A stretch of DNA of 64,000 nt, from contig MU008160.1 in NCBI GenBank assembly GCA_010909165.1, forward strand, positions 1,178,001 to 1,242,000, read 5' to 3'. Positions 13,085 through 50,816 of the stretch are shown in pieces. A program made the position numbers and the translations under genes. The notes under the pieces are model-generated. The model ran no database searches, was not told the DNA's origin, and saw only the letters and a program-made list of their open reading frames with translations. Position 1 is the first letter of the stretch. Each line of letters starts with the position of its first letter. Source of the stretch: Anthoceros angustus. Its lineage: Eukaryota; Plantae; Anthocerotophyta.

Positions 13085-13157
13085 GAAGCAGCTGACTCTC
13101 TCCTTCTCCAGAGCAAGGCAGGAGCTCCCAACAAGCCAGGCGCTTGCTGCGGCGGCC

Positions 13158-13460: not shown

Positions 13461-13865
13461 AGGAGGGAGCAGGAGGGACGGCATGGCGCTGTTGCTGTTG
13501 CAAAATGTGGCGTGCTTTTGTATTCGGAGCAGCAACGGTCAGTTTGTGACTGAAATTTGAAGCAAAGCTTAAGGGGCGCGGACGATGGCCTGACACTGCG
13601 CTCCCAGCCAGACGAAAGAATTCCGCAGAAAGCGAAACGGTGGGGAGATATGCCCTCGGACACAAGTGGGTATACGACTTCACGCTCAAAACGTCCAGGT
13701 GCAGGAGCTGCTCTTGTCCAAGGCCATGAGTGATTTTGCTGCATCACATCTTGCCTGTTCAGCGGGATGGACTTCAGATTGGGCAAGCCACATCGGGGAC
13801 CAAGGTGAAGACGGCATCGTCCGGCCTGTTTCTGGGGTTCATGAATTCGACCGCAGTCGCCTCGC

Positions 13866-19702: not shown

Positions 19703-22700
19703 TCAATGCCTATCCCCACACGAACAAAATCCATCCAGGAGACGGTGCACTTGGTGTGAATCTCGAACTATAATCTCTCGCTGTTCAAGGCGTGACATGA
19801 TCTTGGAGCTGCTGTGGCAGTCATGACACATTCGAAGGTTTTTAAGTACCTAGCAGAAGTGTGCCATCAGGAGTGTTCAGCAGTCCATCCGCCAAGGCCA
19901 GCTTCTCTGCATGGCCACACAAGGCATCTTCATTCTCCTGTTCGGACACTGCTCTCAGCACCGACTGTGTTTGCGGCACATGCCCACCTTGCTTCTTCAA
20001 CCTCATACATACACTCCTCAGCTTTGATGAGATGTCAGCCCTCTCCTCTCCCACAGTAAACTCGTGGACCTTGTTCTGCACTTCGATGCACACCTTTGCA
20101 GCCTTCTTCCAGGCACGTGCCGACTTTCTAAGCCTCTCGATTGTGCCCACGCCTTCCCACCTGCCAGCGTTCACGTACATGGAAACCAACAAAACATTAT
20201 GGTGAGGCATTTCCAGGTTCCAGTTCTGTAAGATGCTCGAAACATTGCCTTCCACCCTCTGCATCACCATGGTTCTTACAGGCACTCAGCAGTGACGTCC
20301 AGCCCACCACACGGTTCTGGAATGGCTTAGCCTGCAGAAACGACTTCGCTTCATCCAGATGTCCTGATTGCCCAAGAAGGTCCACCATGCAGTTGTAGTG
20401 ATCATCTGTGGGTACAATACCGTTGTCCTCCACCATCATTTTGAAGTACCGCTGGCCCTCCTCCACCAGACCGACGTGACAGCATGCCACAAGCATGCTG
20501 TCACGTCGGTCTGGTGGACTCATTAGGCTCCACGCCTTGCTGAGACATCTCATCAAAGCACTGCTTTGCCTTTTGACCATTGCCATGTTCGGCATAGCCA
20601 TTGAGCAGAGCACTCCATGTAACCACACCCCATACGGGCAACCTGTCAACTCCTCGGCGAGCTTCCTCGAGGCTCCCACACTTAGAATACATGTCCACCA
20701 GGCAGTTGCTGACCATTACATTAGCTTCCAATCCCTGTTCCTGAATCTCTGCACGAAGCTCCCTCCCATAATGCACCACTCCCACGCTGGAACATGCTTG
20801 AAGGAGGGACACAAATGTCAGGTGATTGGGGGTGGTGCCCTCCTGCTGCATACTGGCATAGAGAGCTATAGCTTCACGACCGAGCCCCTACTGAGTGTAT
20901 CCTGCGATCATGGCATTCCAAGTCACCACGTCTCTTATAGGCAATTTGGAAAACAAAGCACGAGCATCCTCCGGGCTTTCACCTTTGGCATACATGCCCA
21001 TCATGCTGATGCAAACAGAGACATCAGCTTCCAGGCACCTATCACGGATCTGTGCATGAAGCTGCTTCCCCCGATGCAATGCTCCCACACTGGCACATGC
21101 TTGAAGTAGGCAGAGAAATGTAATATGGTCGGCCGGAGTCAAGCCCATCATCTGCATCCTGTCATACAGATCAAGAACTTTCCTGCAATCATGGCATTCC
21201 AAGTCACCAAATCTTTCGTGGGCAATGAATCAAACACTTGGCGAGCATCACCTACACTCCCGCATTTAGAGTACATGTCCACCAGGCAGTTACCTGTAAC
21301 AACAACAGCTGCAAGCCCTTCCAGCTCAATCTGCATATGAAGCTGCTTCCCCTGGTGCAGGGCCCCAATACTGGCACACGCACACATATGTAACTCGATC
21401 ACCCAGGATCATGCTCTCTCTCTCATGGGTAGTCGGTCAAACACTCTGCGAGCATCCTCCACGCTGCCGCATTTTGGAATACATGTCCACCAAGCAATTG
21501 CCAACAAGTAAATCAGCATCTAGTCCTCTTTGCCGAATCTCTTTGTGAAGCTGCTTCCCTTGATGCAAAGCTTCCAAACTAGCACACGACTGGAGTGAGC
21601 ACACGAATGTTACCTTATTGACTTGAAAGCCATCAAGTTACATCCTATCGTACAGATGAAAAACTTCTTCACGAAGATCCTGCTAAGCATATCCAGCAAT
21701 CATAGCATTCCATTCCACCACCGTCTTGGTGGCCATTGCATCGAGAAACTGTGCGAGCCTCCTCCAACCTCCTGCATTTGGCATACATGTTCACCAGGCT
21801 GCTGCCAACGAAGCTACTAGACTTGGCATCACTGCCCAGAATATCAGCATGCACCTCCTTTCCTGCAACCAAGTCCGTGGCAGATCCGCACGCCTTCAGA
21901 ACTGCCACAAAGATGTGGTTGTCCGGCTTCAAGCCCGACTCCCGCATCTGCCTGTAAAAGGCGATGACCTCCGCAGGCCGTCCCAGCCGGGCATATGCCA
22001 GAATGATGGAAGACCACATGTAGACATTGGGTACCTCCACTTTCCCGAATACCTGCACTGCATTCTCCTGCTTGCGATGGGCAGCATACATCCCCAAAAT
22101 GTGGGTTGCCACGAATGCGTCGCTCTCGTACCCGCCATTCCTGGCAATGGAATGCACTTTCCTACCCAGCAGCAGGTCCTTCTCTCCCGAGCACCTCTTC
22201 AGCAAACGATACAGAACAGAGTCAGGCACGCGACATCCCCGCTGCACCAGGCCGTCCAACGCTTCCACAGCCTCGCTCAGCTCCCCATCCTCGCATCTCC
22301 TGCTCAGCCTCTCCACCATTGCCGCCCTTTCCCCATCCCCATCCCCTGCGCCTCCATCCCCCTTGGCCAGCTGCAAACCCCACCCATTCCGGCTTCAGCC
22401 GGCTGTTGAGCCACAGCACCCGCCTGGATACCTTGTGCCTGAAGTCGGGATAGCGGGGACTGGGCTTGTCCGCCCCGTTGTCCCACCGCTGCCTGGGATC
22501 CACGAAGAATTGGTGCCACAGCCGCTCCTCCCCGGTCTCTGCGGCACCAACAGCCTGCGGGGTATAAGGCCTGCACACTCCCGTCCCCGGAGCTCGGCGG
22601 CTGCAGCAGCTGACGCAACGTCGGCAGGGGAAGGGGACACGGCAGAATTTCTGCCAGTGCCATGGCCATGCCCACCACCGGGTTCCATCGTGATGGATGG

Positions 22701-32439: not shown

Positions 32440-32783
32440 AGTGAAAACCGTGAAGCTCAAATCTGAAAGGAAAACAGGACTTGGGACTCCATTTCGTCAC
32501 TTGCCGGCCCACGATGAGCCATGTTGTGGAGGAGCACGGTTTTTCTCTCGAGCTATGTGTGCGGTTGGAGTTACGGTCGTCTTCCCTGACGCCTGTTATT
32601 TAAGTACATTTTTTATTTCATGAGACAAATTTCTTTACTTCAAGACTGTTGTCAGGTCCTGATTTCTATCCGAAATAGATTTCCACACACAAACATGCAG
32701 GCGGAAATGTCGAGAATGCGGATCTGCCTACGTTTGATCTTCGCCGGGTGAGACCAGAGGGGGAAGCGAGCCGCAGGAACGGC

Positions 32784-35534
32784 ATGGCGCTGCTGCCTTT
32801 GCAAAATGTGGCTTTGTTTCTGGACTCGAAGCAGCAGCAGCGGCCAGTTAGTGAGCTGAATTTGAAGCAAAGCTTCAGGCGGGACGATGGCCTGTCACTG
32901 CCTGATGTCTCAGCTTCTGCTGAACACAATGATGAAGGAATTCTGCAGAAAGAGCAACGGTGGGGAGATCTGTTCTCAGACACAAGGAGGTATTCTGACT
33001 TCAGTCACAAGAAGTCCGGGAAGGACAGTCCGAGTCCCGGTTGGGTGGAGTCGCAGCTGGCCGGATGGGACGCTGGGGTGAGGGAGCCCTGGCTGTGTGA
33101 TGGAAATTGGGTTGAGATTTTGACGAAGTGTTGTGAGGAGGGGGAGTTGAAAGAGGGTGTGGAAGCATTGGAGCACCTGGTGAAGAGAGGGTGTAATGTC
33201 ACCCACATTTTCTTCTACCGTGTCCTGAAGAGGTGCGTTGGGCAGAAGGATGCGGCTCTTGGGAGCCGTGTCCATGCCCTTGCTTGCCAATGTGGGTACG
33301 AGTCGAATCCCTTTTTGGCCACCCTCATGGTTGGAATTTATGCTTCTCACGGGAGATTGAGGGAGGCAGTGGAGGTTTTTGACAAGGTGGTGGCTCCGGA
33401 CGCTCATTTGTGGGCCACCATTATTTTGGCGCATGCTAGGCATGGGCAGGTTGTGGAGGCCATGAAGTTGTATCGGTTGATGAGGGATTCCAGTGTGAAG
33501 CCAGACGACCATGTGTATGTGGCGGTTCTCAAGGCCTGTGCTGCTGCAGAGCATCTGGTATTCGGGAAGGAGGTGCACGCTGATATTCTGGCGAATGCTG
33601 GGAGGGGGAACATTTTCGTGGGGAACAGCCTCGTGAACATGTATGCTAAGTGTGGGAGCTTGGATGATGCCCGCAGAGTGTTTGACAGTCTGCCCGAGAG
33701 AGATGTTGTGACATGGACTGCCATGATCAAAGGGTATACGCAGCAGGGGCTGTGTCGACAGGCTCTGGCTGTCTATCATGATATGCAGCAGGAGGGTGTA
33801 GTTCTGGCTGATCATGTCACCTTTGTGTGCCTCCTTCAAGCATGTATTGGGCTTGGAGTTTTGGTGCAGGGGAAGGAGCTGCATGCTAGAATTCAGGAAA
33901 GGGGTCTGGAAGGTAATGTGTTTATTGGTAGCTGCTTGGTGGACATGTACGCAAAGTGTGGGAGCTTGGAGGATGCCCGCAGATTGTTCGACAGGCTGCC
34001 CACGAGAAGTGTGGTGGTGTGGAATGCTATGATTGCAGGATATGCTCATCATGGGCTTGGTGGACAAGCGCTTGACCTCTATGCAGGTATGCAACTGGAT
34101 GGCATGACTTTAGCTAATGCTGTTACTTTCATGAGCCTCCTGCAAGCTTGTGCCAGCTTCAGAGATCTGCACCAGGGGAAGCAGCTTCATGCTCAGATCC
34201 GGCAGAGAGGACTGGAAGCCGATTTACTGGTTGGGAATTGTCTGATCGACATGTATGCAAAATGTGGAAGCTTGGACGATGCTCGCAGTCTGTTCAACAG
34301 AATGCCAACAAGAGATGTAGTGACTTGGACCTCCATGATGGCAGGATATGTCCAGCAAGGGAAGGGCGTAGAAGCGCTCTCTCTCTATTCCAGTATGCAA
34401 CAGGAAGGCATCACTCCAGCCAATCAGGTTACCTTCGTGTGCCTTCTTCGAGCATGTGCCAGTGTCGGAGCTCTGCTTCACGGGAAGGAGCTACATGCAT
34501 GCATTCGAAAACAGGGATTGGACACGGATGCGCTTATTGGCAGCTGCCTTGTGGACATGTATGCAAAATGTGGCAGCTTGAACGATGCTCAGAGGGTATT
34601 TGATGGATTGCCCAGCAGAGATGTGGTGACATGGAGTGCCCTATTGAACGGCTATGCTGAACACAGCGATGGTCGAATGGCGATACAATGTTTCAAAGGG
34701 ATGCTCGATGATGGTGTCCAACCGGATGGTACCACTTTTATTTGCCTTCTTGTGGCATGCAGTCATGCAGGGCTGGTGCATGAAGGTCGGCAGTATTTTG
34801 ACATGATGAAAAACCTCGGCATTCAGCCTACTGCTCATCACTACAATTGCATGGTTGATCTTCTTGGGCGGTCAGGCCTTCTGGATGAGGCAGAACATAC
34901 TTTGCTTACCATGCCCTTCGAGAAAAATGTGGTGGGGTTGACGTCTTTGCTTAGCGCCTGCCGAAGCTACGGTGACGCGGAGCGAGGAAGATGGTGTTTT
35001 GATCGTCTTGTAGAAATGGAACCTGAGAATGCCACGGCATACGTTCTCTTGGGCAACATCTATGCCAGCAACGGCAGGTGGGATGATGTAGATAGAATAG
35101 AAAGCCTTCGAAGGTCCAAAGGTGCTAAGAAGAAGCCTGCAAAGGTCTGCATCGAGGTTAACAACCGGGTCCACGAGTTCACAGTGGGGGAGGAGAGGCT
35201 TGATATCTCCTCAAAGCTACGGAGCGTGGACAGAAAGCTGAAAGAGGAAGGAGGGCATATGCCACAGACAGAATTGGTCCTGAAGCCAGTTTCTGAGCTG
35301 GAGAAGGAAGATGCCCTGTGCGGGCATGCAGAGAAGCTGGCCCTGGCATACGGTCTCCTCAACACTCCTGAGGGCACTCCATTGCTGGTCACTAAAAACC
35401 TTCGCATGTGCAATGACTGCCACAGCAGCACCAAGATCATGTCACATCTCGAAAATCGAGACATCATAGTCAGAGATGCCCACCGAGTGCACCGTTTTGC
35501 TGAAGGCTCTTGTTCATGTGGAGATCGGCATTGA
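32784..35534 (+). CDS. Intact PLS-class PPR protein (about 18 motifs, E1, E2) with DYW:KP domain ending in DRH; candidate organellar U-to-C editing factor
   Basis: Uninterrupted single-exon ORF; KKKPAKVCIEV in place of the PG box; HAE (35325-35333); CNDC; terminal CSCGDRH. First ATG at 32784. Confidence 0.95.
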   Translation: MALLPLQNVALFLDSKQQQRPVSELNLKQSFRRDDGLSLPDVSASAEHNDEGILQKEQRWGDLFSDTRRYSDFSHKKSGKDSPSPGWVESQLAGWDAGVREPWLCDGNWVEILTKCCEEGELKEGVEALEHLVKRGCNVTHIFFYRVLKRCVGQKDAALGSRVHALACQCGYESNPFLATLMVGIYASHGRLREAVEVFDKVVAPDAHLWATIILAHARHGQVVEAMKLYRLMRDSSVKPDDHVYVAVLKACAAAEHLVFGKEVHADILANAGRGNIFVGNSLVNMYAKCGSLDDARRVFDSLPERDVVTWTAMIKGYTQQGLCRQALAVYHDMQQEGVVLADHVTFVCLLQACIGLGVLVQGKELHARIQERGLEGNVFIGSCLVDMYAKCGSLEDARRLFDRLPTRSVVVWNAMIAGYAHHGLGGQALDLYAGMQLDGMTLANAVTFMSLLQACASFRDLHQGKQLHAQIRQRGLEADLLVGNCLIDMYAKCGSLDDARSLFNRMPTRDVVTWTSMMAGYVQQGKGVEALSLYSSMQQEGITPANQVTFVCLLRACASVGALLHGKELHACIRKQGLDTDALIGSCLVDMYAKCGSLNDAQRVFDGLPSRDVVTWSALLNGYAEHSDGRMAIQCFKGMLDDGVQPDGTTFICLLVACSHAGLVHEGRQYFDMMKNLGIQPTAHHYNCMVDLLGRSGLLDEAEHTLLTMPFEKNVVGLTSLLSACRSYGDAERGRWCFDRLVEMEPENATAYVLLGNIYASNGRWDDVDRIESLRRSKGAKKKPAKVCIEVNNRVHEFTVGEERLDISSKLRSVDRKLKEEGGHMPQTELVLKPVSELEKEDALCGHAEKLALAYGLLNTPEGTPLLVTKNLRMCNDCHSSTKIMSHLENRDIIVRDAHRVHRFAEGSCSCGDRH

Positions 35535-36071: not shown

Positions 36072-38210
36072 ATGCAGGGTGTCCTGGACACCTCGCAGGC
36101 TGCAAATGTGAGCTCGGGTGGCCCGATTATGTGGAGTACTGGCAAGGCGTGGCTGAGGAGCTGGAGAGCGCACACCACGGCCTTCTCGACCTGTTCCTGC
36201 CGCCGCTCGCAAGCTGGAATCGAATCGGCTGGGGAGCTGTTTCCGTGGGGCAACAGGAAGGCCCTGCTGCATTCGGTGCATTGCGATCCGGACTTCAGGC
36301 ACAGCGTCTCTGGCAACTCATGGGCCCGGGAGGTGCAGGCCAGCGTTTCAGGCCGGGGAGGAGACAGCGGCGCAGAAGCTTCCAGGAAGCATCTGGGCTC
36401 TGTGGGGAGAAACCTGGCGGAGGGTAGAAGGCTGCACACCGGGATCGGGAGAGCCGGTCTGGATGGGGACCAGGAGCTCGGGGGCGCGGTTGTGGGCATG
36501 CTTGTCAAGTGCGGGAGCGGGAGCGGCAGGGGGGCGTACAGGATTTCGGAGGCGGACTGGACAGGGCTCATTTCGGGGTACGCCAAGCAGGGCCAGAATC
36601 ATGACGCGGTGGACGCGTACGAGAAGATGCAAGAGGCTGGGGTGATGCCCACCTCGTTCACCTACTGTGCGGTGCTGAAGGCGTGTGCTGGGCTGAAGGA
36701 TTTAGGGCTGGGGAAGCAGGTGCACAGGGATGTGGTGCGGAATGGGTTCGAGGCGGACCCGTTTGTGGCGCCCGCTCTGGTGACCATGTATGCGAAGATC
36801 GGGAGCTTGGTGGATGCGTTGGAGGTGTTTAATGCGAGCCCGAAGGAGGGGAATGTGTTTTTGTGGAACACTATGATTGCTGGGTATCAGCAGCATGGGT
36901 ACGGGACGGAGGCGTTGCAGCTGTTTGGGAGGATGCAGGAGCAGGGGGTGGTGCCCAATAGGCATAGCTATGTGCATGTGCTGCGGGCGTGTACCAGCAT
37001 AGGAGCTGTGAGCGAGGGGAGGAGGGTGCATGAGGGGATTACGAGTACTGGGCTGCATTCTGATCCTATCGTAGGGGCTGCGTTGGTGGAGATGTATTCG
37101 CAGGCTGGGCAGATGGGGGATGCCAAGAAGGTGTTTGATGAGTTGCCTGCGAGGACGGTGGCCGCTTGGAATACCATGATCAGGGCCTTCGGTCAGAATG
37201 ATGACCCTATGAAGGCTTTGCAGTGCTTCTACGACTTGCAGAAGCAGGGGTTGAGGCCGGACGGGCAGACGTTCATTGCGCTGTTTGTGACGTGCAGCCA
37301 CCAAGGGCTGGTGAAGGAGGGAAGGAATTTCTTCAGGGTCATGACTGAGGAGTACGGCATAGCTCCCACACTTCAGCACTTCACCTGCATGGCAGACCTT
37401 CTGGGCAGGGCCGGCCACTTGAAGGAGGCGGAACATATGCTGAAGACCATGCCGTTTGTGCCCACTATCGTGGGCTGGACCTCCCTGCTCAGTGCCTGCA
37501 GCAGGTTTGGGGAGCTGGAGATCGGAAGGCGGTGCTTCGATAATGTGGTGAGGATGGATCCTAGCAATGCGTCTGGGTACCTGCTCATGTCCAGGCTCTA
37601 CACCGCCGTCGGGATGAAAGAGGAGGCATACAGGATAGACAGGCTGAGGAGATCTGCTGGTGCAAAGAACTATCCAGCGAGTGTCTTGATTCACGTCAAC
37701 GACGGAGTGCATGAGTTTCTGTCTGGCGGGGGATCCAAGAACCATCCCCTGTTCAGACAACTCCAGGAGAAGGTCATCAGCGTGACAGAGAACATGAAGC
37801 GTCTTGGGTTCGACGTGGGGGACTCCCCAGCGTATTCTCGACAGCCACCTCCAGAGCCCTCCTTCTCCGATTCGCCCTCTTCGCCCTCGTCGCCACTATC
37901 TGAAGCTGATCACAAGGCTGTGGCGGAGTACAACAGGGCCATGGGGCCCATAGTGGGGCGCAAGAAATCCAACAGGCTTAGGATGTGCGCGAGCTGCCAC
38001 CAGTGGGTCAAGGTCCTCTCCTTGACAGAAAAGCGGGAGGTCATCATGCGTGATGGATACCGCACCCACCACTTCAAAGACGGCATGTGTTCTTGTAAAG
38101 ATCACGACTACGGGACTATTCAGGGGACTGTTTTGGAGATGACTCATGATAGCTGCGCGCTCAACAAGAACGTGAGCAGCTACCGCTATTCATTTCAGGC
38201 TCCGCAGTGA
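36072..38210 (+). CDS. PLS-class PPR protein (about 9 motifs, E1, E2) with a divergent KP-like DYW domain lacking the HxE catalytic motif
   Basis: Intact ORF; KNYPASVLIHV; Pro/Ser-rich insertion; HKA in place of HxE; LRMCASCH; HHFKDGMCSCKDH; C-terminal extension of about 30 aa. Start codon uncertain. Confidence 0.9.
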   Translation: MQGVLDTSQAANVSSGGPIMWSTGKAWLRSWRAHTTAFSTCSCRRSQAGIESAGELFPWGNRKALLHSVHCDPDFRHSVSGNSWAREVQASVSGRGGDSGAEASRKHLGSVGRNLAEGRRLHTGIGRAGLDGDQELGGAVVGMLVKCGSGSGRGAYRISEADWTGLISGYAKQGQNHDAVDAYEKMQEAGVMPTSFTYCAVLKACAGLKDLGLGKQVHRDVVRNGFEADPFVAPALVTMYAKIGSLVDALEVFNASPKEGNVFLWNTMIAGYQQHGYGTEALQLFGRMQEQGVVPNRHSYVHVLRACTSIGAVSEGRRVHEGITSTGLHSDPIVGAALVEMYSQAGQMGDAKKVFDELPARTVAAWNTMIRAFGQNDDPMKALQCFYDLQKQGLRPDGQTFIALFVTCSHQGLVKEGRNFFRVMTEEYGIAPTLQHFTCMADLLGRAGHLKEAEHMLKTMPFVPTIVGWTSLLSACSRFGELEIGRRCFDNVVRMDPSNASGYLLMSRLYTAVGMKEEAYRIDRLRRSAGAKNYPASVLIHVNDGVHEFLSGGGSKNHPLFRQLQEKVISVTENMKRLGFDVGDSPAYSRQPPPEPSFSDSPSSPSSPLSEADHKAVAEYNRAMGPIVGRKKSNRLRMCASCHQWVKVLSLTEKREVIMRDGYRTHHFKDGMCSCKDHDYGTIQGTVLEMTHDSCALNKNVSSYRYSFQAPQ

Positions 38211-38968
38211 CCTCTGAAACACTAGTCTTGGCAAGGATGGTTTAGAATGCCTCAAATCCTGGCACAAATTGTGTTCTCGAACGTGTACAAATAAACATTC
38301 CTACCAAGCAGTGTTCTGCAGTGAACTGTGAGGAACGTGGCTTGGCAAGGGTGGTTCACAGAGTGCCTCATTTTCTCATCGCAGGGTCTGGCACCAAGTG
38401 TATGCCTGGTGTGCAAATATACCTGGAGCAAGCAATTGTTCCCTCATTCACCATTCACCCCTGATGTCTGCAAATAACATATGTAGCAGTCAGCTGTTCC
38501 TCCATTCACCTATTCACCTACTACCTATCCTCCATTCACCTAAACAAATGGCACCCTTAAAGTAGGTGTAACAACTAAAATAGGTGGATACATAAATTAT
38601 AATAAATAAATTAAACAATATTAACTTATTATCTTTACTCCAATTCTTGAAAGAAAACTTTGTAATAGGGTACCCTTTCATCTCAAGTTTTAATTTCTTG
38701 TGTATTGTAGGTATGTTTTTCTTGTTGTATTTGCTGATTGTAATAGTATAGCTTGTTCTGTTTGCAATCTTTCAATCATGTGAATTCAAGATGTACTAGT
38801 TAATCTATTTTTGTGATAAGATATTTTTATTTTATTTCTATAGGTAGTCTTAGGTATAGAATGGTTACACATGTTCTTCCTTTGAAAGCTCAATTCATTT
38901 AGAAATTATGAAAAAGTTAAGGTATCAATCTACATACCAAGAAATATTGACTCAAACTCCTAGAGTTG

Positions 38969-40387
38969 ATGACCTCGATGGCAATGTTTACATACTTTTT
39001 TCATATTCTGATTCTAGTAGTCATTATATGTACAAATGTACATGCTCTTGAAAGGTCTTTTGAGCATGGTGGTTCATCTTTGAATGAAAATGAAGTTCTC
39101 TTTGAAAGTGATGTAAAGGATATCTTTGATGCATGGATAACAACCTTTAAGAGAAACTATATCAAGAATCCAAAAGAAAAAAGAATCAAATTCAACATAT
39201 TTAAAGATAATTTCTGGTATGTCTACGAGCACAATATAAAACATGAAAAAACTTATTCTCTACGTTTGAATAAATTCGCTGATCTTACTAATGAAGAATT
39301 TAGGTTGCGTTTTGTTGGTCCACGATTGAATAGATCATTAAAAGCTTTTCAAAATCACACTAAAAGCTTTATGTATGAACACTCTAGCATACCAAAGTCA
39401 ATAGATTGGAGGGAAAGGGGAGCAGTAACTCCAGTTAAGGATCAAGGTCCTTGTGGAAGCTGTTGGGCCTTTTCCACAGTAGGTTCTGTAGAGGGAATAA
39501 ATCAGATAGTGACAAATGATCTCGTAAGTCTTTCAGAGCAAGAGCTTGTTGATTGTGACACTACTATCAACCAAGGGTGTAATGGGGGTCTTATGGACTA
39601 TGCATTTCAATTTATAGTTAAAAATGGTGGTCTTAGCACTGAGGAGGATTATCCTTATATTGGAGTTGATGGAAAATGTCAAACAAATGAAACCAATAAA
39701 CAATTGGTGACAATAGATGGTTACGAAGATGTACCATTAAATGATGAAACCGCTCTTTTAAAAGCTGTAGCTAATCAACCAGTAAGTGTAGCAATAGAAG
39801 CGGGAGGACGAGATTTTCAATTTTACTCTAGCGGAGTATTCACAGGGATTTGTGGAACAAATTTAGACCATGGGGTAACTGCTGTAGGGTATGGAACTGA
39901 TACTAGTGGGATGAATTTTTGGATTGTAAAAAATTCTTGGGGTAAAGATTGGGGAGAAAATGGATATATTAGGTTGGAACGTGACACCAGTACAAAATCT
40001 GGAATATGTGGTATTAATGTGGAGGCTTCCTATCCTGTGAAACAGAAGTCTCCTCCATTTTCAATTCGATCTTTAAGACTAAGTTCTTCTATACCATTTC
40101 GTGACCAAATTTGTGACACAAAACATACTTGTCCAGTAGGAAATACTTGTTGTTGCACACAACTTAGTGCGAATAGAACAAGTAAATGTAGTGCATGGGG
40201 TTGTTGTGCTTTAGAATTTGCTTCTTGTTGCGATGATCATATTCATTGTTGTCCACAAGCATACCCTGTTTGTGATGTAAAGGCTGGACTTTGTTTGAAA
40301 CCCTCTAGAAATCTAAGTGAAGGTGTTATGGTTTGGAGGAATACAAATCTAGATGAGCCCTTGTCAACTTTTAGCTGTCCTTTATGA
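38969..40387 (+). CDS. RD21: Papain-like cysteine protease (C1A) with I29 prodomain and granulin domain, RD21-like; intronless and AT-rich
   Basis: Signal peptide; ERFNIN-like EKRIKFNIFKDN; QGPCGSCWAFS (catalytic Cys); LDHGV (His); KNSWG (Asn); Cys-rich granulin WGCC...CCDDHIHCCPQAYPVC. Confidence 0.93.
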   Translation: MTSMAMFTYFFHILILVVIICTNVHALERSFEHGGSSLNENEVLFESDVKDIFDAWITTFKRNYIKNPKEKRIKFNIFKDNFWYVYEHNIKHEKTYSLRLNKFADLTNEEFRLRFVGPRLNRSLKAFQNHTKSFMYEHSSIPKSIDWRERGAVTPVKDQGPCGSCWAFSTVGSVEGINQIVTNDLVSLSEQELVDCDTTINQGCNGGLMDYAFQFIVKNGGLSTEEDYPYIGVDGKCQTNETNKQLVTIDGYEDVPLNDETALLKAVANQPVSVAIEAGGRDFQFYSSGVFTGICGTNLDHGVTAVGYGTDTSGMNFWIVKNSWGKDWGENGYIRLERDTSTKSGICGINVEASYPVKQKSPPFSIRSLRLSSSIPFRDQICDTKHTCPVGNTCCCTQLSANRTSKCSAWGCCALEFASCCDDHIHCCPQAYPVCDVKAGLCLKPSRNLSEGVMVWRNTNLDEPLSTFSCPL

Positions 40388-40639
40388 TTTTATGAGTAAA
40401 ATCATAAATTTAAGCAACCATTTTCATTTGGTATGAGAAAACCTTTAACCAATACAATAAGTTTATTTTAAAAATATTTTATATTCTTAATAAAATTTTA
40501 TATTCTATTTTTAAATCCCCTGCATTTTGGAGGTATTCATCTCGGGTGTAGAGGAGGGGGTTTTTCCCCTGCATGTGTCCTTAAGGTCGGCTAAGGGCCT
40601 TTTATCGTCTCTGGTCAAGTGGGCTTCAAGCCTCTCTCC

Positions 40640-41113
40640 TGAAGAAGCACTATAGGCAGTTGCACAGCAAGCTCTTCTTTTGGATTCTTCAATTGCTCAA
40701 CCCACTCAAGCTCGTCTCCGCTCGTATTCAGGAAAGGGAGTAGGTGCCTGGCTTCTGGCCTGACCTTGCATCTCAGCCTTCTCATTCGCACCGGCTTCTT
40801 GGCTTCTTTTTCTACCGCGATGAGGTTCTGCCTAGGCTTGGTCCAACCTCTGGCCTATTCTCTCACAAATAGCTTTCTTCCGGCAACAAATATCCATTGC
40901 TCTACAAAGGGTGTTGGCAAACGCAATTTTTAGAACAGCTTCGAACACAGGGAACGTAGCATCTTCAGCTCGGCGGTTAATAGGCCCTTCCTTATTCCAG
41001 ACTATGAGGTAGCTTTAGCGTAGACATTCGGGGGGCCTGGTCCCCCTTAGTATGGGCCCTTTAGGGGGTTGTTCCCTGTCACCCCAATGTAGATGGGACT
41101 TCCCATCTCTACA
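40640..41113 (+). mobile_element. 5'-truncated, internally deleted copy of the REL-type LINE family
   Basis: ARLRSYSGKGVGAWL and FFRQQISIALQR match 26.7-28.5 kb; ends in a hairpin at 41088-41113. Confidence 0.65.
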
Positions 41114-41469
41114 TATTTAGAAAATCTACACATTTTATTCTTATATATTTGAAATAGTTTTTTATATTATATTTGCATATAATATTTTGTTACAAAGGTG
41201 TACATATAGGTTGGTACCTAAAAAATATGTGAAGTTGTAGAGATAAGAATCAATCTATCTTAATAACGAAATGATATAAAATATTTTATATTGAGTTTAA
41301 AAATAGACCTAAAAAATTAATTTTATCCACTGAGGTTATTGAGTCTTTTTTTTTTTTGTGCATTAACGAGTCAATTAACGAGGGAGCCAGGTCTGTGAGG
41401 TCGTGAATCCTAAACTTCAACTTTTTGCGCAAGTAGGATCCTAGATTTTATTCAGAGTTGTGTGGAATG

Positions 41470-42125
41470 TTACGATGAATTTAGAAATGGTGCTTTTGAC
41501 CACTTTGGTTAGACAGTATTAGACTTTTTCAGGGGTGTGTTAAATGCTAGGAGGAATTTAGAAATGGTGATTTTGACCACTTTGGTTACACAGTAGTAGA
41601 CTTTATTCAGAGGTGTGTCGAATGTTAGGACGAATTTAGAAATGGTGCTTTTGACCACTTTGGTTACCAATACTGTGTCCTCATCCTGTGACATTACTAA
41701 TGTTTCTTTTGCATCTAACAATACTTTGTCCCCATACTCCAACATAAATAATATTTCCTTCATATTTAATGTGTCCCCTGCATCCTCTAACATTATTCAT
41801 GTTTTCTCGGCATCTACTTATATTGTATCCGAGGTTATGCTCTGACATCATCTATGTTGCATCTACAAATACTATGTCCCCATGCTCTAGATCTAACACC
41901 ATTAATGTTTCTTCTACATTTACCAACATTATGTCTACAAATAATGTGTCCTCATACTCTAGATTTAACACCATTAATGTTTTATCTATATCTAGCAACA
42001 TTATGTCCCTATCCACTAACCACATTAATGTTTCCTCCACCAACTTTTTGTCTCTATCTTGAAACTTTATAAATGTATCATTAATGTTTCCTCTACCAAC
42101 TTTGTGTTTGTATCTTGAGACTTTC
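41470..42125. repeat. AT-rich degenerate tandem repeats (about 78-bp unit x3, then about 70-bp degenerate units)
   Basis: GAATTTAGAAATGGTG...GACCACTTTGGTTA x3; TAACACCATTAATGTTT-type units follow. Confidence 0.75.
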
Positions 42126-42934
42126 ATTTACCAACTGTATGTTTTTGTCTTATCTTTTCACTATTTTAATCAAAAATATGTTTTTTTCTTTGATCCAAAG
42201 TATTGAGATTTCAGACTTAGGTAGATTCAATTTGAGTATTGAAACCTAAGGAGATTCAAGCTGGTGAAGTATAAATGGATTACATGCATACATACATAGA
42301 CATCTTTGGGAGTTATTTTATTTACTAAGTTTATTTTATGTTTTTAAAAATTTAATGTTATAAATTGAATAAACAACACCTCCTACGACGAAGGGAAGGG
42401 TGATACGTGGCAAACAACACACAACCTAAGATCACGTCAATCATTCCTGACACTTGACTACACGATCTAATATAGCAATCTCATACAAGATAAATATATA
42501 TTAGCAGGCCTTCAAGTGACCTGCCATACGTGTTTAGTGACGAATCCTAGATGACCCTCTACGTACTACATATCCATATTCTTATTCATACAATGTACAC
42601 ACTACCAGAGTCTACATACACAAAATACACACTAAAGTCATCAAACTACGAATGCCTTCTAGCTACTGACCTTGACTGAAGACGAAGCTCACATCTAGCT
42701 CTCTCCAAGCTCTCCACAATGCTATCGAAACAAAGAATGATGTATTCTTAAGAACTCGGCCATTTAAATCCCGCAAGCTCACCCTATTTGGACAACTGGT
42801 ATCCCAAACTTCTAGAGAGCACGCGCGGATACTCTATGGTAGTTAGTTTATGTAGGGTGGATATATGCTTTCTAAAGAGTAACGAAAGGACACATTGCAA
42901 GCTCTGCTTTAAGAAAGCATGCATCCGACCTCTT

Positions 42935-43235
42935 AGTGTGTGTCCAAATGGCTTAGGCCAAATGGACACACATTTATAAGAACGCCATTATTAAGCATCC
43001 CGCGCTTAGATCGGTACTTACATGGAGTGCCTAAAGGGAGTGGATGCCCTTGGTGCAAGTAGCTTGGGCACACCTTAGTACAAGTTGTTAAATACCAAGT
43101 TCCATGCGCTTAGATCGGTACTTAGATGGGGTGCCTAAATGGAGTGGATGCCCTTGATGCAAGTAGCTTGGGCACACTATGGTACAAGTTGTTAAGTACT
43201 AAGTCCCATGACAGGAAAATTCTGTCCAAGTGGAC
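42935..43235. repeat. Dispersed repeat (probable non-autonomous TE) with an internal ~105-bp duplication; second copy at about 51125-51300
   Basis: CCAAATGGCTTAGGCCAA...CTTAGATCGGTACTTAGATGGGGTGCCTAAA shared with 51.1 kb. Confidence 0.8.
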
Positions 43236-44159
43236 TAAAATATAATCTTCTTTTTTTCCTTCTTCTTAGTCCCGACTTCAATATGCAGCTAACATGGTAG
43301 CTTCTACACGAGTAATTTTTAATATCATTACTCATTGTTTTTTTTGATTTTTTATCTTTTCTAGAAGAAGACGAAGAAGAAGAAGTCTGTAACTAGAACC
43401 GTTACAAAATGCATTCTTTACATGTATATGCTCCGTTACAAAATGCATTCTTTACATGTATATGCTGGACTCTCATGCGAGTGACCCGGTTTTCAACTTT
43501 CAACCCAAACGAGAGATTCCTTGGTCAGCGGGTTTGGCATGCATCTAAGAGGTTATCAACCGGGACATACGGTGGATCGAGTCCCCCAATCACGTAATAT
43601 ACCATAAAATAAAACCTAAACTCTGACGAAGGTAACTAATGAACCTTATCTCACGAAGATAAGTGGACCTAAACCTTTTTTGGTGTGAATTATTGGATTA
43701 TTTGTTGGCTAAAACAACTCTGACCAATTACCATATCTCGAGGGACACAAGTTCCTAGATTCTTATTGAGCCAACTTCCATCCATACTAGGGAATTATTA
43801 TTAAATAGTAAATTAACAACCATGTTATCACAAGATAGCAGGAACTTGATATCCTTAACCAAAGAAGTATCCACTGTATTAATCAAGTAAACTATATATC
43901 ACTTATTTAAATTATGTATAGGTATTCTTCATTATGTAATTTTAATGTTTCAATTAAGGTGGTGAAGAGAGAGTGTCATGCTGGGATGTGCACGGGGCTT
44001 CGTACCACACGAGCTGTACGGCGAGCAGGCGCTTTTACTTCCTGATGAGATTTAGATATGTACTGTGAACTACCATTCTTCTTTACCCCGCATGTAAGCG
44101 ATCCTAGTCACCAGTCACCCCAGACGGACAACCAGCCCGTCCCTTTTGGGGTCTAGAAG

Positions 44160-44330
44160 TTGGACAACAAAACGTCCCCACAAAATTCCTACCTTCCCCA
44201 CAAATGAGAAACCGCACGGCAAACGTTAGAGAAAGAAAACCGCGCGGTCGTAAAAAGGTCCCCACAAGATTCCTACCTTCCCCACAAATGAAAAAGCGCA
44301 CGGTAAACTTGAGAACGAAAACCGCGCGGT
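44160..44330. repeat. ~82-bp direct repeat x2 upstream of pyruvate kinase
   Basis: CCCACAA.ATTCCTACCTTCCCCACAAATGA...AAAACCGCGCGGT occurs twice. Confidence 0.8.
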
Positions 44331-44638
44331 ACAGGATTAGGGCTCATGGCCCGAAATAGCACGTAGGTGAAAAGAGGTAAAAGCCCAATCTCAAGAAGAA
44401 GCATGTCACGCGACTGTGCACTCGGATGTCTTGGATGCCTCGGCAATGACCACCAGGGCAGCCCAAGCCTACCTGTAGCACATTTCCAAGCGCCTCCTTC
44501 ATTTGCAATAGGATCAGTGCAGAATAGAGTTGCTGCGCCTGCTTCAGGTTCCCAGCAAAGTGGGTCGCCTACTGATCCGGTATTTCTTCAAAGGTGAGCA
44601 GTCCCTTCCGTCGTACATCGAGCAAGACGCCATCCAGG

Positions 44639-46231
44639 ATGCATCCGGCGCACTTGCAGCTGCAAGGCCCGCTCCGCCTGGGCTCCATACTTGAGACCTC
44701 CGCCGTGAACCCTTACCCAGCCCTGACCAAGGTGATCGGCACCCTGGGCCCCAAATCCCGGTCGCTGGAGATCATCGAATCCCTGCTGAAAGCGGGCATG
44801 TCCGTGGCCCGCTTCGACTTCTCCTGGGGCAGCCATGAATATCACCAAGAAACCTTGGCCACGCTCAGAAAAGCCATCCACAACACGAAGCGCCCCTGCG
44901 CGGTGATGCTGGACACCATCGGGCCAGAGCTGCAGATCCTGAACAAAAAAGAAAAGCCTGTGTCCTTGAAGGCAGACGCCACGGTGACGCTCACGCCGGA
45001 CAGGAAACGTGAACCCTCCTCACAGATCCTTCCTGTCAACTACGATCACTTGGCCAAGTCGGTGAAGCCAGGGGACGTCATCTTCGTCGGGCAGTACCTC
45101 TTCACCGGGAGCGAAAACACATCCGTCTGGCTGGAAGTGGTGGAGACCAAAGGGAAGGAGGTGATCTGTAAGGCCAAGAACAGCGCAACCCTGGTGGGCA
45201 GCGTCTTCACAGCCTACGCCTCCCAGATCCACGTCACGCTGCCCACGCTGAGCGAAGGGGACAAGGAAACCATTCAAACCTGGGGCGTCCCCAACAACAT
45301 CGACTTCGTCTCCGTCTCCTACACCCGCCAGGCCGAGGACATCCGGGAAGCCAAAGCCCATCTTGCCAACCTGGGAGCCAGCCAGATCCAGGTGTACGCC
45401 AAGATAGAAACCGCCGATGGGCTCCGGCACTTCGACGAGATCCTCAAGGAGTGCGATGGCGTTATCCTGTCCCGGGGCAACCTGGGGATCGACCTGCCGC
45501 CGGAGAAGGTGTTTCTCGTCCAGAAAGCAGTGCTCCACCGATGCAACATGGCAGGTAAGGTGGCCGTGATCACCCGCGTCGTCGACTCCATGGTAGAGAT
45601 TCCCCGGCCGACCAGAGCCGAGGCCACGGACATCGCCAACGCCGTGCTGGACGGTGCGGACGGCATCCTGCTGGGAGCCGAAACCCTAAGAGGCCTGTAC
45701 CCTGTGCAGACCATCGCCACCGTGCAGCGCATTTGCGCTGAGGCGGAGAAGGTGTACAACCACAACGTGTACTACCGGCAGGCAGTGCTGGCTGCCGGAG
45801 AGCCCATGAACCATTTGGAATCCATCGCATCCTCCGCAGTGCGAGCTGCCACCACCACAAATGCTTGCATGATCGTGGTACTCTCCTACTCCGGCAAGGC
45901 GGCTCGCCTGGTGGCCAAGTACCGGCCGCCTGTGCCAATCCTGGTGCTGCTCATCCCCAAGCCTGAGACGCCCTCCCCTGCAGCCATAACCTTCAACGGG
46001 ACCTTCCAGTTCAGGCAGTGTATGGCAGTACGCGGCCTGATGCCACTGCAAGCCGAAGGGCAGAACCTTGCCCCACTCACCTCCGCCGACCTCTGCCTCA
46101 AAGCTGCCATTGAGCATGGGAGAGCGGCCGGTATAGTGAAATCCCATGCCAAGGTCGTGGTGTGCCAGAAAGCCGGGGACTCGTATGCCATGAAAATGGT
46201 TGATCTTGACAGCAACCAGGAAACATTCTAG
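44639..46231 (+). CDS. PK: Cytosolic pyruvate kinase (plant clade with ARFDFSWG / SRGNLGIDL), single coding exon
   Basis: [83 protein letters not shown] at 44639. Confidence 0.95.
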
Positions 46232-46533: not shown

Positions 46534-48519
46534 TCATATTGCAGCGAAGTCGACTAAAGGCTGGTGCCTTGGCGACACGAAAGACTGTACATTGAACTTG
46601 AGCAGCTTGTCTCGCCCTCTGGTTGGTGGTGGAGATGTGTAAGTCTTGATTCCAATGAGCGTCACAAGGGTGTCGTGGACACGCCCATATAGCATCCTTT
46701 CACCATTCCAGTACTCCAAAGGTCTGGATCTGATCCTAGTGCTGCGCCTGAGACCATCCTTCCAAACTGTACCAGCACCTGCCAAGCTCTTTCTCTTGCT
46801 ATTTGCTGCTTCGGTTTGCCTTTTGCGTTTGGACTTGCCTTTGCAAAGCTCAGCATCTGTGTAGTCATGGTTCTGTTCAGTGGCTTGATTAGTATCCCCG
46901 GAGCCATCACCTTGAGTATTCACAGCCTGCCCTGACCCATTTGTCGCGTCATCGGCATCGTCATCGAGTGGTTCAACCAAATCACGGGCAGATTCAGGAG
47001 GCCTGCCGGATTCAGTTTCATGCTGTTCAGAGCTCTGGCCTTGTGTTTGCATGAAATCCCCAAGTAAATCCACGCTCTCTTGATCCTTGAGATGAGCAAC
47101 ATCTGCAGACTGGTATCCGACATCAATCCCCTCACAACCAGCTTGTCCTGACTTCACCTTTTCAGATCCTGTCGCCTCAGGGGCAGGTTCGGAGCTACCA
47201 TCGATAAAGTTCTTACTCGTAGCAGCATCTCCAACATCCTCGCCATTCTCCATCTGCATTTCCTGCAATCTTCTCAGGGAATCTGGAACAACACTCCCTT
47301 TGGGCCTTCCCAAGCAAGAAGTTCTTTGTTCCACCTCATCCAAAGTCTGCATAACGTCTCGTGTGTCGGGAGTCTTAAAACCAATCACTTCAGGGTCCGA
47401 ATTCGCCCCCGGTTGCTCCTCAATCGGCCCCTTCGTTTCACCCTGCTCAACTCTTGAATCTCGTGAACGTCCCGAAGCATCATCTGGCTCAATTCCTCCG
47501 TCCTCCCTTCTCAGCACATTTGGAGTACAAGGGGTTGCACTCTTCTGCTCATCTACAAGTGTTTCGGCTTCTAACCCTTCTGCGAATCTGCAGGTTCCAG
47601 CAACGGACTCCACATCTGAGGAACAGGCATCAAGTACCTCCTTGTCCAGTAACTCACTGAGTTCCATCATTTCTTTCATCAAGTCTGCTGGTCCGTCCTC
47701 GTCCTCTGCTTGCAATGTAGGGCTTACCGGAAACAGTACCCGTGGTGCTGCGGCCTCTTCCAGAACTGCATCCTCTTCGGGAACTACATCCTCCTCCAGA
47801 AGTACATCCTCCTTCCCCGTTTTAGATTCAACAGTTCCTTCCGCAAAGAGCACCTGGGGTGCTCGGACCTCGTCCACAATTTCCATGTCCCCCTCCTCAG
47901 GTCCAGCAATTGCTTCCGCTGCTGGCAAACTCACAGGAGCAGCCTGTCCCCCTCCTCCACCGCCATAGCTCAGGCCTTCGAAGCAAAACTGTCCAGAAGC
48001 CGAACCTTCCTCCTCTACAAGGTTCTCCTTATCCCAACCGGCGATTTCTTCAGCATCAACTTCATCCTCCAAGCAAATGTGAAAAGCAGTCTTTCCCGCA
48101 CTCCCCCGCCTTGCTTTGGTAGCGCTTCCTCGAGAACGCACTCTACGCTGTCCTTTTCCCCTTTCCCCTTTCTTGTCCATAAAATTCTCAATCTCCTGCA
48201 ACACGCTATACTTGCTACCACCTCCAAGCCAGCGCGTGGATGAGGCACACTTGGAAGCAACGCCTTTCTCAACTCCGCTGTCCTTCACCTTCTTCCGACG
48301 CATATAAGTTGCAGAGAACAGCGATCCTTGTACAGACGCAGCATCCGCTGGTGCCCGGGGGGAAGCTTGCTTCACCTCATCAAGCTCCCGGACCAGCTTG
48401 GCGTGACGCGGCATCAGGCGTGCCAAATCTTGCTCCTCCTCCTCTTCCTCCTCCTCGTCATCCTCCCAGCAGGAATTTCTTGGAAGGCTACTTCGCCTCT
48501 CCCTCGGCGCAGAGTGCAT
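46534..48519 (-). CDS. CENPC: Centromere protein C (inner kinetochore), single exon as seen
   Basis: C-terminal plant CENP-C motif [27 protein letters not shown]...LIGIK; acidic, disordered body. First in-frame ATG at 48519. Confidence 0.88.
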
Positions 48520-48890
48520 CCCTTCCTCCAAATTCCGCTCCAATGCCGCTGCGATTACCAGGTGACCATGCCTGGCCAAAGACTTCAGACAGGCCGCCTT
48601 CGTCGTCGCGACTGTGCAGTGGAGCCGGCCGTTGGAGCAAAATTTTTGAAAACGAGAAAAGAGTGCACGGGGTCCTCGGCTCCGCTTTATAGCCTTCCGT
48701 ACATCCCTTTTCCAAAATGCAAATATCTACAAAATATTCTATGCAGGTGCGTATTCACATATTCTGAAGGGAGAGAATTTCCACCACCGCAACCGGCTCC
48801 CAATAAGAGCATGTCAGGGTGTCTTCCGCCGAGCGCGTTACTTCACTCTTGCTTCCACTGAGACTGGAATGCGTCGCGTGCGAGTTGTTG

Positions 48891-50816
48891 ATGCCACCGA
48901 TGGCGGCCTTGGGAGAGACGGACGACCCGGCCGCGCCCCTGGCTTGGGGACTGGAGGTGGAGGCGGCGAGGGATAAGGATACGGTCGTGCCGGGCGCGGG
49001 CGACCGGTGGGCGGCTTTGCTGGCCGCCGTCTTGCGGCCTTGGCACTGGATCGTGGGGATTGCCAAGGAGGTGAATGCCAGTGTGGTGTTCGGAATCATG
49101 ATTGTGTATGGCGTCAGCCAAGGGTTTGGGGGAGCATACAACCGCGTGGTAGTGAGGTACTATTGGAAGGATGTACAGGGTGCAGCTCCCTGGCAGGTGC
49201 AATTCTACAAAGGGATCAACTTCCTCCCTTGGAATGTGAAGCCTTTGTATGGTTTCCTCACGGACGCCTTCCCGATGGCTGGGTATCACCGAAGACCTTA
49301 CTTCATTCTGCCAGGTTCCGAGCGTCTCTGGGTTGCATTTGCTGCGTAGGGACAGTGATGGGGAGTCGGTATGAGAGTAGCGTAGCTGAATTATCCGACA
49401 CCGGGATTATGTTTTCGTTTGCAGGTCTGTTGACCGTTGTAGCAGTTGCGGGTGTAGCGTTAGGAGGGAAGCTACATGATTACGTTGCTGTTATACTCTT
49501 CACAGCTGTCTCGTTAGCTGCTGCCATTGGAGATGTTACCATCGACGCTGAAGTGGCCAGGAAAACCCGTGAACATCCGGCTCTGGGGCCGGATATGCAA
49601 GCTCTGTGCTCTGGATGCTCTTCTGTGGGAAATCTGATCGGTTTTGCCTCCAGCGGGATGGTTGTTCATGCCCTTGGTTCCCAGGTCTGCAGACTTGTGT
49701 AGTTCCCAGAATCTGATATGGTTTTTGGATGGTTACAGGATGGAGAGTTGATGCACCTGCAGGTGCTGATCTAGTACCGTCCATTTCCATGTTGGCAGGG
49801 AGCATTCGGGCTTCTGTTCATTCCGGCTGCACTTTTTCTGATCCTTGGTGTCATCTTCTACGAGGAGCGTGACAGTTGCGGTTCACACCAGGTTTCTGTC
49901 CTAAACTACTTTTAGGCTCTATCTTATCTGATTCTCTCTGGTTGCAGATCTGAAGGACTCTTGTGTGTTTTAGGCGTGGGGGAACCTTCGGCAGGTTCTG
50001 CGAGAGATGTGGTCTACTCTTAGACAGCCCCAAGTCTGGAGGCCCGCTTTGTATATGTATCTCTCATGGGCATTGTGTCCTGTTATCTCAGAGGCAAAGT
50101 TCTATTGGTATACTGACACCACTGTCGGCCCTGGCTTCTCCCAGGTATCCTTTTGCGTAACTTATTTTCTGTCTCTCTGTCTCCCGGTAGTCACAATCTC
50201 ACTTTTTGCTGGCGAGCAGGACTTTATTGGCATTATGTATGCTGTTGGCTCTGTTGGAACCCTGGGTGCCTCCTTTGTCTACAACAAATACTTGCGGGAG
50301 TGCTCCTTCCGGAGCATGCTCAGATGGTCACAACTCCTTCTGGCAGCTGCTGGAATGCTGGACCTGCTGCTCATCTTCCGCATCAACCTCAGGATGCATT
50401 TACCGGACTCCTTCTTTGTTCTTCTTGATGAGAGCCTGACAGGGGCGCTTTACCGCCTCAAGTGGATGCCACTCCTAGTCATGTGCGCAAAGCTTTGTCC
50501 TCCTGGCATCGAGGGCACATTTTTTGCTTTCCTCATGTCAGTAGATAACATCGGCACGTTCTCGGCGGTGTCTAACGGCGGAATCTTGCTCAAACTTTGT
50601 CATGTGGTTCGCCAAGGCAGTGCTGCTGGGCCCGGTCAAACTGATTTTCGGCTTCTGTGGCTGGCAATTCTAATCCGCAATTTTATGCTGCTCCTGCCGT
50701 TGATGTTCCTATTTCTGGTACCAGATACCGGGCCCAGCGTGGAAATCGTTTGTCATGAACCAATTCTTCTGGAAAACGAGGCAGTCAGTAACACTACCGA
50801 ATCCTGCTTGGACTGA
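48891..50816 (+). CDS. Folate/biopterin transporter (BT1 family, MFS), 5 exons
   Basis: PWNVKPLYGFLTDAFP...YHRRPY, DVTIDA, PQVWRPALYMYLS, KWMPLLV...LCPPGIEGTFFA. GT-AG introns at about 49315-49424, 49685-49798, 49891-49973 and 50145-50219. Confidence 0.92.

Follow-up and report, generated by a model that had tools for sequence, protein, structure and literature searches.

Plant organellar RNA editing is catalysed by DYW domains, on which programmable C-to-U and U-to-C editors have been built. They are associated with PLS-class PPR (pentatricopeptide repeat) proteins, defined here by tandem P, L and S motifs (35, 35–36 and 31–32 amino acids, respectively) ending in P2-L2-S2. The active centre of the DYW domain of OTP86 consists of H892, E894 and K915, with a first zinc ion (Zn1) bound by H892, C920 and C923, a structural zinc ion (Zn2) bound by H924, H947, C954 and C956, and a tryptophan, W960, that is essential in vivo (PMC7611903). 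U-to-C editing is abolished by mutation of the Glu of the HAE motif or of CxxC (PMC9478123) and requires Lys88 (PMC11845758), and DYW sequences without the signature are as a rule set aside as dead, having been filtered out, for instance, prior to editor design in one study (PMC9478123). Here we analyse a 64,000-nucleotide stretch of plant nuclear DNA from Anthoceros angustus (contig MU008160.1, positions 1,178,001–1,242,000, forward strand; hereafter the window), which was read by open reading frame (ORF) list, Pfam, tblastn and a composition profile. The target ORF at window positions 36072–38210 encodes a PPR protein whose DYW-derived domain has lost its entire active centre, and which is best read as a maintained pseudo-enzyme, not as a decaying relic.

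The 712 codons of the target ORF contain no internal stop or frameshift. The upstream neighbour of this ORF, 538 bp away and likewise on the (+) strand (32748–35534), is an intact PPR-DYW gene of canonical KP type, DRH subtype; it is only ~40% identical to the target and carries K-P-A-K-V, H-A-E, C-N-D-C-H and C-S-C-G-D-R-H motifs. Searching with its protein by tblastn matched the target ORF in a single frame from 36408 to 38102, bearing out an earlier reading of the letters without database searches (the sequence-only reading), which had called the ORF intact. Approximately ten PPR motifs, with Pfam PPR, PPR_2 and PPR_1 matches at E-values of 1e-17 to 1e-42 that indicate the PLS class, precede E1, E2 and a DYW-derived C-terminus. 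The E1/E2 motifs were accepted on a Pfam E_motif score of 26.2 bits (residues 480–536), slightly below the cut-off of 27.3. Pfam DYW_deaminase scores 49.2 bits (cut-off 24) over residues 634–677, corresponding to model positions 48–91 of 93 only, and the DYW domain of the upstream neighbour matches positions 1–91.

Published functional residues were mapped onto two alignments, one (MAFFT) comprising 61 DYW domains, namely the target and three homologues described below, 56 canonical domains and the upstream neighbour, and one (HMMER) of this four-gene family against the solved consPPR-DYW chain 9kfx. The HxE(x)nCxxC signature is only half present, with CxxC intact as previously noted (C-A-S-C-H, 37986–38000) and HxE absent. 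The register of the absent motif depends on the alignment, as MAFFT sets the canonical H-x-E against N-[KR]-[AS] and HMMER against A-D-[HMEK], and in neither is there a conserved His or Glu at this position. The sequence-only reading had pointed to an H-K-A triplet in place of HxE, and this triplet is indeed found at 37911–37919 (residues 614–616), 25 residues before C639, but H614 is replaced by Met, Glu or Lys in the homologues. No HxE concealed in an alternative frame or by a frameshift was found, either by the single-frame tblastn match or in a scan of all + strand frames from 37600 to 38260, in agreement with the earlier reading.

The losses extend beyond the HxE motif. All four family genes have lost the Zn1 His and the catalytic Glu (equivalent to OTP86 H892 and E894), have Asn (N-R-L-R-M) in place of the active-centre Lys (OTP86 K915, KP Lys88; K-N-L-R), and have Asp in place of the terminal Trp (W960). 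The D-Y-W tripeptide position reads D-H-D in the window gene and D-R-D or S-H-D in its homologues, followed by 27–35 extra residues; in the window gene 33 can be counted past the position matching the usual end, close to the 30 or so first proposed. Helix alpha-1 is kept, but where the gating beta-finger would be expected there is a variable, low-complexity Pro/Ser-rich linker that differs in length among the four genes. Of the insert originally described here, the Pro/Ser-rich stretch (~37836–37900) stands, whereas the segment SGGGSKNHP aligns with the canonical G-D-x-S-H-P and is not inserted. Because published mutagenesis shows the lost residues to be essential, the domain cannot be a canonical editor. 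Within the linker, a 9-bp tandem repeat, TTCGCCCTC, is present in 2.7 copies at 37871–37894, encoding S-P-S-S-P-S-S-P and explaining part of the 11-residue length difference to the homologues.

A second set of residues is retained. C639 and C642 (CxxC), H643, H666, C673 and C675 are invariant over the 61 DYW domains, the H-H...C-S-C segment is kept as reported (38067–38096), and R637 and K647 are also retained. The predicted ligands of the structural Zn2 site are all present (H643, H666, C673 and C675, equivalent to OTP86 H924, H947, C954 and C956), so that the original statement that the zinc ligands are kept is correct for CxxC and for Zn2 and incorrect for the catalytic-site His, which is not conserved. 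Five residues, R568, R591, R595, F596 and H598, form the interface by which the DYW domain of consPPR-DYW docks on its PPR tract (PMC13324415); as mapped via 9kfx, four of them are kept and F596 is replaced by Thr. The Arg at position 13 of S2, R(13,S2), is likewise retained.

A word-indexed search with the C-terminal region recovered three homologues only (P0001, P0002 and P0003), all encoded on genomic contigs of a single Logan sample, SRR33208241 (loci L001–L003), and 56–62% identical to the target over their full length and 56–73% over the C-terminal region. Whether homologues retain HxE had been put forward as a check on the pseudo-deaminase proposal, and all three lack it. The four genes have in common an N-Y-P-A-S-V-L-I box, G-S-K-x-H-P, the missing HxE, N-R-L-R-M-C-x-S-C-H-Q-W-V-K, and D-G-Y-R-T-H-H-F-K-D-G-x-C-S-C followed by D-Y and an extension. 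The pattern is thus more than chance, since it recurs, in the same architecture and under purifying selection, in three further genes. When 1.84 billion representatives were searched exhaustively with a HMMER profile, the P0001 and P0003 clusters alone fell below 1e-30, and the next matches were generic DYW domains at no more than 81 bits. Beyond the family, a full-length search yielded no further protein with more than 40% identity and a scan of JGI metagenomes no further family members, and the window has no flanking genes in common with loci L001–L003.

One homologue, P0003, carries a 21-residue canonical HxE box (F-C-G-H-S-E-R-L-A-I-V-F-G-M-L-S; L003:2227–2373) in frame after C-S-C, hence downstream of the zinc module and not upstream of CxxC (tblastn against canonical DYW, E = 7e-6), with no more DYW remnants beyond it. 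This box may be a scar left by recombination, a chimera created during assembly, or an active-site helix that has changed position. The extensions of the window gene, P0001 and P0002 have a His and, three residues later, a Cys in common. Their tails show no significant similarity to that of P0003 and the window tail is predicted at a pLDDT (predicted local distance difference test) below 50, and the idea that the window tail is itself a relocated HxE box was dropped.

Codon alignments of the four genes indicate that purifying selection has constrained the DYW-derived module more tightly than the PPR tract. Synonymous divergence (dS) is saturated (above ~1.5 or not computable), against which nonsynonymous divergence (dN) is 0.02–0.17 in the C-terminal half of the domain, 0.07–0.22 in its N-terminal part and 0.23–0.33 in the PPR tract; their ratio, omega, is ~0.04–0.17 where computable, rising to ~0.5–0.75 only in the linker and tail, with ~0.6–0.7 for some gene pairs in the linker. 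Invariant family columns follow the same order, with 39 of 52 in the C-terminal part, the most conserved segment of the protein, 30 of 53 in the N-terminal part and 8 of 32 in the linker, while the C-terminal extension is weakly constrained. The window copy shows no acceleration or excess of private change: counted at positions on which the remaining three genes are identical, its private changes number 17 in the PPR tract (29, 17 and 23 for the others) and one in the C-terminal half (0, 0 and 5 for the others). The proposal that the domain is maintained by selection is upheld by these values.

The same comparison bears on whether the window copy is a recently inactivated pseudogene of a formerly functional family that has yet to acquire a stop codon, which we regard as very unlikely. 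Its 712 codons remain open at 59% GC, its GC content at third codon positions (GC3, 0.74) is similar to that of the other intact genes of the window, all family-invariant Cys and His residues are intact, and substitutions at family-conserved sites are not in excess over the other three genes; in contrast, those PPR-DYW copies of the window that have decayed show frameshifts and stop codons and lack Cys residues. That the gene sits in a cluster with such frameshifted copies nonetheless speaks for inactivation, as do in-frame deletions that leave its first S motif five residues short, the expansion of the 9-bp repeat in its linker, the purely genomic nature of the case for a gene and the absence of the exact protein from the protein collection searched.

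The predicted structure separates the retained from the remodelled parts of the domain. AlphaFold2 (AF2), run with the 61-sequence alignment, gave the target domain a mean pLDDT of 71 and did not form strand beta-3. Confidence is high for the hairpin and helix alpha-1 (79–89) and for the C-terminal alpha-3/beta/Zn2 module (88–91), but drops to 50–78 in the linker, the shortened helix and the expected beta-3 (50–60 in the finger region), the middle and tail together being given as 36–62. As a control, the neighbouring canonical KP domain modelled with the same sequences reached a pLDDT of 96 and a predicted template modelling (TM) score of 0.89 with all elements formed. This confidence pattern, together with the KP control, suggests that the ends of the fold are kept while the catalytic middle is remodelled. 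A Foldseek search against the PDB returned DYW domains for all of the top six matches (9kfx, 7w86 and 7o4e/f), with target-normalised TM-scores of 0.16–0.56, the best being OTP86.

One rival reading is that the domain is still an enzyme with a rebuilt centre, either an endoribonuclease or a deaminase or transaminase that relies on different residues. Polar residues peculiar to the family are invariant at the old centre, namely an Asn in the shortened helix, a preceding Asp and H-Q-W after CxxC; CxxC itself is invariant despite the loss of its His partner, so that a metal may still bind at the former active site, and published work has connected DYW domains with RNase activity (PMC10318007, PMC9459714). 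However, the active-centre His, Glu and Lys, each essential in tested DYW domains (PMC9478123, PMC11845758, PMC7611903), are all gone, the region is predicted at low confidence by AF2 and the DYW nuclease activity is itself disputed (PMC3239186, PMC10318007), which makes a rebuilt enzyme extremely improbable.

A maximum-likelihood tree of the 61 DYW domains recovered the family as a clade with 100/100 support on a stem of ~2 substitutions per site with short internal branches, and a 98/85 split separated 43 PG-type rows from 18 rows comprising the family and all HAE (KP) and HCE types. The KP-side placement proposed by the sequence-only reading agrees with this split, although the long stem may have introduced long-branch effects into the grouping. 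A KP origin also agrees with the box beginning at 37668 (residue 533), NYPASVLIHV, which is PA-type without Pro-Gly and thus nearer to KP than to PG as previously noted, and with G/K-D-R/H (D-[RH]-D in the family) where proteins of the DRH subtype end. The resemblance is partial: the family has Y-P-A-S-V (Pro-Ala, no Gly, with Lys replaced by Tyr) against K-P-A-K-V in the neighbour and K-P-A-x-A in the KP type, it lacks the H-A-E active site of the KP subtype, and it has the canonical G-x-x-S-H-P motif that is missing from the neighbouring KP gene. The combination of long stem and short crown is consistent with rapid change once catalysis had been lost and with constraint being restored afterwards.

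On balance, we consider it probable that the target encodes a selected non-catalytic PPR RNA-binding protein acting by occupancy, a judgement covering jointly its selected, non-catalytic state and its mode of action. The fifth and last residues of the PPR motifs are largely conserved across the four genes, so that a single kind of RNA site is probably bound throughout the family; the protein is also probably targeted to an organelle. We posit that the DYW deaminase domain was turned into a non-catalytic, zinc-stabilised module (a pseudo-deaminase), and that the PPR tract would still thread a specific organellar RNA into the E1-E2/DYW tunnel without the base being converted. Entry of the RNA is expected because the docking surface and the S2 Arg are kept, and occupancy is the proposed mode of action because RNA would be led into the tunnel and yet conversion is impossible. 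The dead domain could serve as a structural cap or as an interaction surface, the likeliest roles being to stabilise an RNA, to take part in its processing (splicing, for example) or to shield a site. The sequence-only reading had proposed as conceivable roles a scaffold, a dimer partner, a site protector, or a factor in splicing or RNA stability.

An interaction surface would also be expected if the protein were an editing specificity or adaptor factor, with the PPR tract picking the site and the dead DYW module recruiting or complementing an active DYW deaminase in trans. Precedents are E+ proteins acting with DYW1, DYW2 or MEF8, and Glu-less ADAT3 paired with ADAT2. Consistent with such a role, constraint is stronger on the C-terminal half than on the PPR tract, the elements that position the target nucleotide in real editors (E1, E2, the PG-box-like hairpin and the residues docking DYW on PPR; PMC13324415) are kept, trans complementation of incomplete DYW domains and possible DYW multimerisation are documented (PMC7611903), and P0003 bears its canonical HxE-box fragment after C-S-C. 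Against this reading, known trans-complemented PPR proteins lack the C-terminal half that this family keeps while losing the middle, no partner is known, the residues touching the 0 and +2 phosphates have been altered and the P0003-type tail is missing from the window gene; we consider an adaptor rather unlikely. Distinctly unlikely, in our view, is the more specific proposition of a novel clade of PPR pseudo-deaminases that selection maintains as regulators of organellar editing and not as editors. If true, such regulators could shield sites in a hyper-editing plant, where C-to-U and U-to-C editors abound, or, alternatively, form the non-catalytic half of a heteromeric editor; P0003, with its HxE helix appended after the zinc module, could even represent active-site complementation in cis.

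Several observations weigh against a selected protein acting by occupancy. The deletions in the first S motif and the linker repeat expansion of the window copy count here as well, as does the fact that the evidence for the target gene is genomic sequence alone. The selection estimate derives from four sequences, three of them from one genomic sample, in deep and saturated comparisons, with which a very recent death of the window copy would be compatible. Three RNA-contacting residues of consPPR-DYW near the edited nucleotide are changed (N(9,E2) to Arg, K(last,E2) to Asn and R(12,E1) to Ser), the two in E2 being contacts to the RNA backbone at that nucleotide and at +2, and the RNA path near the former active site may consequently differ. 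Specificity positions are partly unusual, in that three of the six P/S motifs end in Thr and one S motif has Pro as its fifth residue, and no RNA target could be predicted from the PPR code because too many residue pairs are non-canonical. Finally, the evidence fits non-editing and editing-accessory roles alike.

Features of the target gene in the window, with positions counted from the first nucleotide of the window.
Feature	Positions	Strand	Description
Whole ORF	36072–38210	+	712 amino acids plus stop; PLS-class PPR protein with DYW-derived C-terminus; Pfam PPR, PPR_2, E_motif and DYW_deaminase matches
N-terminal region (~103 amino acids)	36072–36380	+	Without PPR similarity; Ser/Thr/Arg-rich with few acidic residues
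PPR tract (residues 104–465)	36381–37466	+	L, S, P-L-S, P-L-S, P2-L2-S2; parsed on the family alignment and Pfam PPR matches
E1 and E2 motifs (residues 466–532)	37467–37667	+	Pfam E_motif; aligned with E1/E2 of the neighbour and with chain 9kfx_A
N-terminal part of DYW-derived domain (residues 533–583)	37668–37820	+	NYPASVLIHV box (PA-type, no Pro-Gly), V-H-E-F, G-S-K-N-H-P, helix alpha-1
Variable Pro/Ser-rich linker (residues 584–628)	37821–37955	+	Replaces gating beta-finger and HxE helix; includes H-K-A and a short helix with the family-invariant Asn
C-terminal part of DYW-derived domain (residues 629–680)	37956–38111	+	N-R-L-R-M, C-A-S-C-H, H-Q-W-V-K, R-D-G-Y-R-T-H-H-F-K-D-G-M-C-S-C, K-D-H-D-Y
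C-terminal extension (residues 681–712)	38112–38207	+	Past the usual DYW end; from the family alignment
AATAAA hexamer	38290–38295	+	80 nucleotides past the stop codon; consensus match only

The N-terminal region is possibly an organellar presequence, as suggested by its composition; tblastn gave no match ahead of 36408, and no significant similarity to the N-terminus of P0003 was found, nor any before the first L motif. Just downstream of the AATAAA hexamer the GC content drops from 0.59 to 0.37. A scan for bacterial promoters and terminators was set aside as the target gene is eukaryotic.

Two further PPR-DYW genes of the KP/DRH type in the window are pseudogenes. The one at 19706–22316 (-) has several frameshifts with H-A-E, CxxC and G-D-R-H still legible, and the one at 11698–15933 (+) is in an advanced state of decay, with stop codons and missing Cys residues; the presence of two such pseudogenes indicates a PPR cluster with ongoing gene death. 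Downstream of the target lies an AT-rich island (38300–44400, GC 0.37) harbouring an intronless RD21-like papain protease (38966–40387, +) with I29 propeptide and granulin domain, whose GC3 of 0.23 makes it a striking compositional outlier to the target, pyruvate kinase and MBOAT genes (0.74–0.81). Pyruvate kinase is encoded by a single uninterrupted ORF (44594–46231, +) whose sole close match is the single-ORF copy at L004:2590–4236 in Logan SRR33208241 (76% identity), compared with ~61–66% to ordinary land-plant (cytosolic) pyruvate kinases. It appears to be a divergent, probably retroposed, paralogue common to both organisms, and because this closest relative is only 76% identical we take SRR33208241 to represent a related organism and not the same one. 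The adjoining 681-codon ORF (46534–48579, -) has no Pfam match even at E = 1. The window also contains a copia-type gag (8000–8995, -), an MBOAT acyltransferase in a single 531-codon ORF (17301–18893, -) and a BT1-family transporter fragment (50007–50816, +).

In a literature search that did not cover Gutmann 2020 and Gerke 2020, no report was found of a conserved HxE-less DYW clade with this pattern of loss and retention. It is already known that DYW proteins without the signature exist, as do non-editing DYW proteins (PMC9459714); the conserved clade is apparently, though not certainly, new. The family indicates that tight constraint on a DYW domain can outlast the loss of its entire active centre, with structural zinc site and PPR docking surface in place, and so separates two roles of the domain, catalysis on the one hand and architecture or interaction on the other. 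It would represent a "dead" DYW scaffold of natural origin and, in plants with both C-to-U and U-to-C editing, a candidate for a component of RNA metabolism that does not act by catalysis, and if the gene is expressed, its RNA target would reveal the purpose of such a module.

Compared with described systems, the target most resembles PPR-DYW:KP proteins of the DRH subtype, the U-to-C factors of hornworts, lycophytes and ferns exemplified by the upstream neighbour, with which it shares the PLS tract, E1, E2, a DYW-type fold as far as predicted, a box of PA type without Pro-Gly, C-x-x-C-H and H-x-F-K-D-G-x-C-S-C followed by G/K-D-R/H. Unlike these proteins it has no HAE, an Asn for Lys88, a low-complexity linker for the gating finger, and a tripeptide ending in Asp with the additional 27–35 residues; its domain is only ~32–36% identical to theirs and set apart by the long stem of ~2 substitutions per site. 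A functional parallel is offered by ADAT3/Tad3, a deaminase-fold pseudo-enzyme that has no catalytic Glu but still has the Cys residues that bind zinc, and whose retained function is to bind substrate or pair with a partner. ADAT3 belongs, however, to another deaminase-fold clade and has a full metal site and a known catalytic partner. Similar by architecture are PpPPR_43, involved in cox1 intron 3 splicing, and CRR2, involved in rps7-ndhB cleavage, which combine a full PLS-E1-E2-DYW arrangement with non-editing RNA processing (PMC9459714), although the profile search found no relationship of the target to such proteins closer than generic DYW similarity. The E and E+ proteins (CRR4 with DYW1; DYW2, MEF8) are likewise PLS-class PPR proteins unable to edit alone that keep E1, E2 and the PG-box part. 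The E+ proteins are truncated after this part and lack the zinc-binding C-terminal half, whereas the family described here is not truncated at this point, having lost the middle of the domain and kept that half as its most conserved segment.

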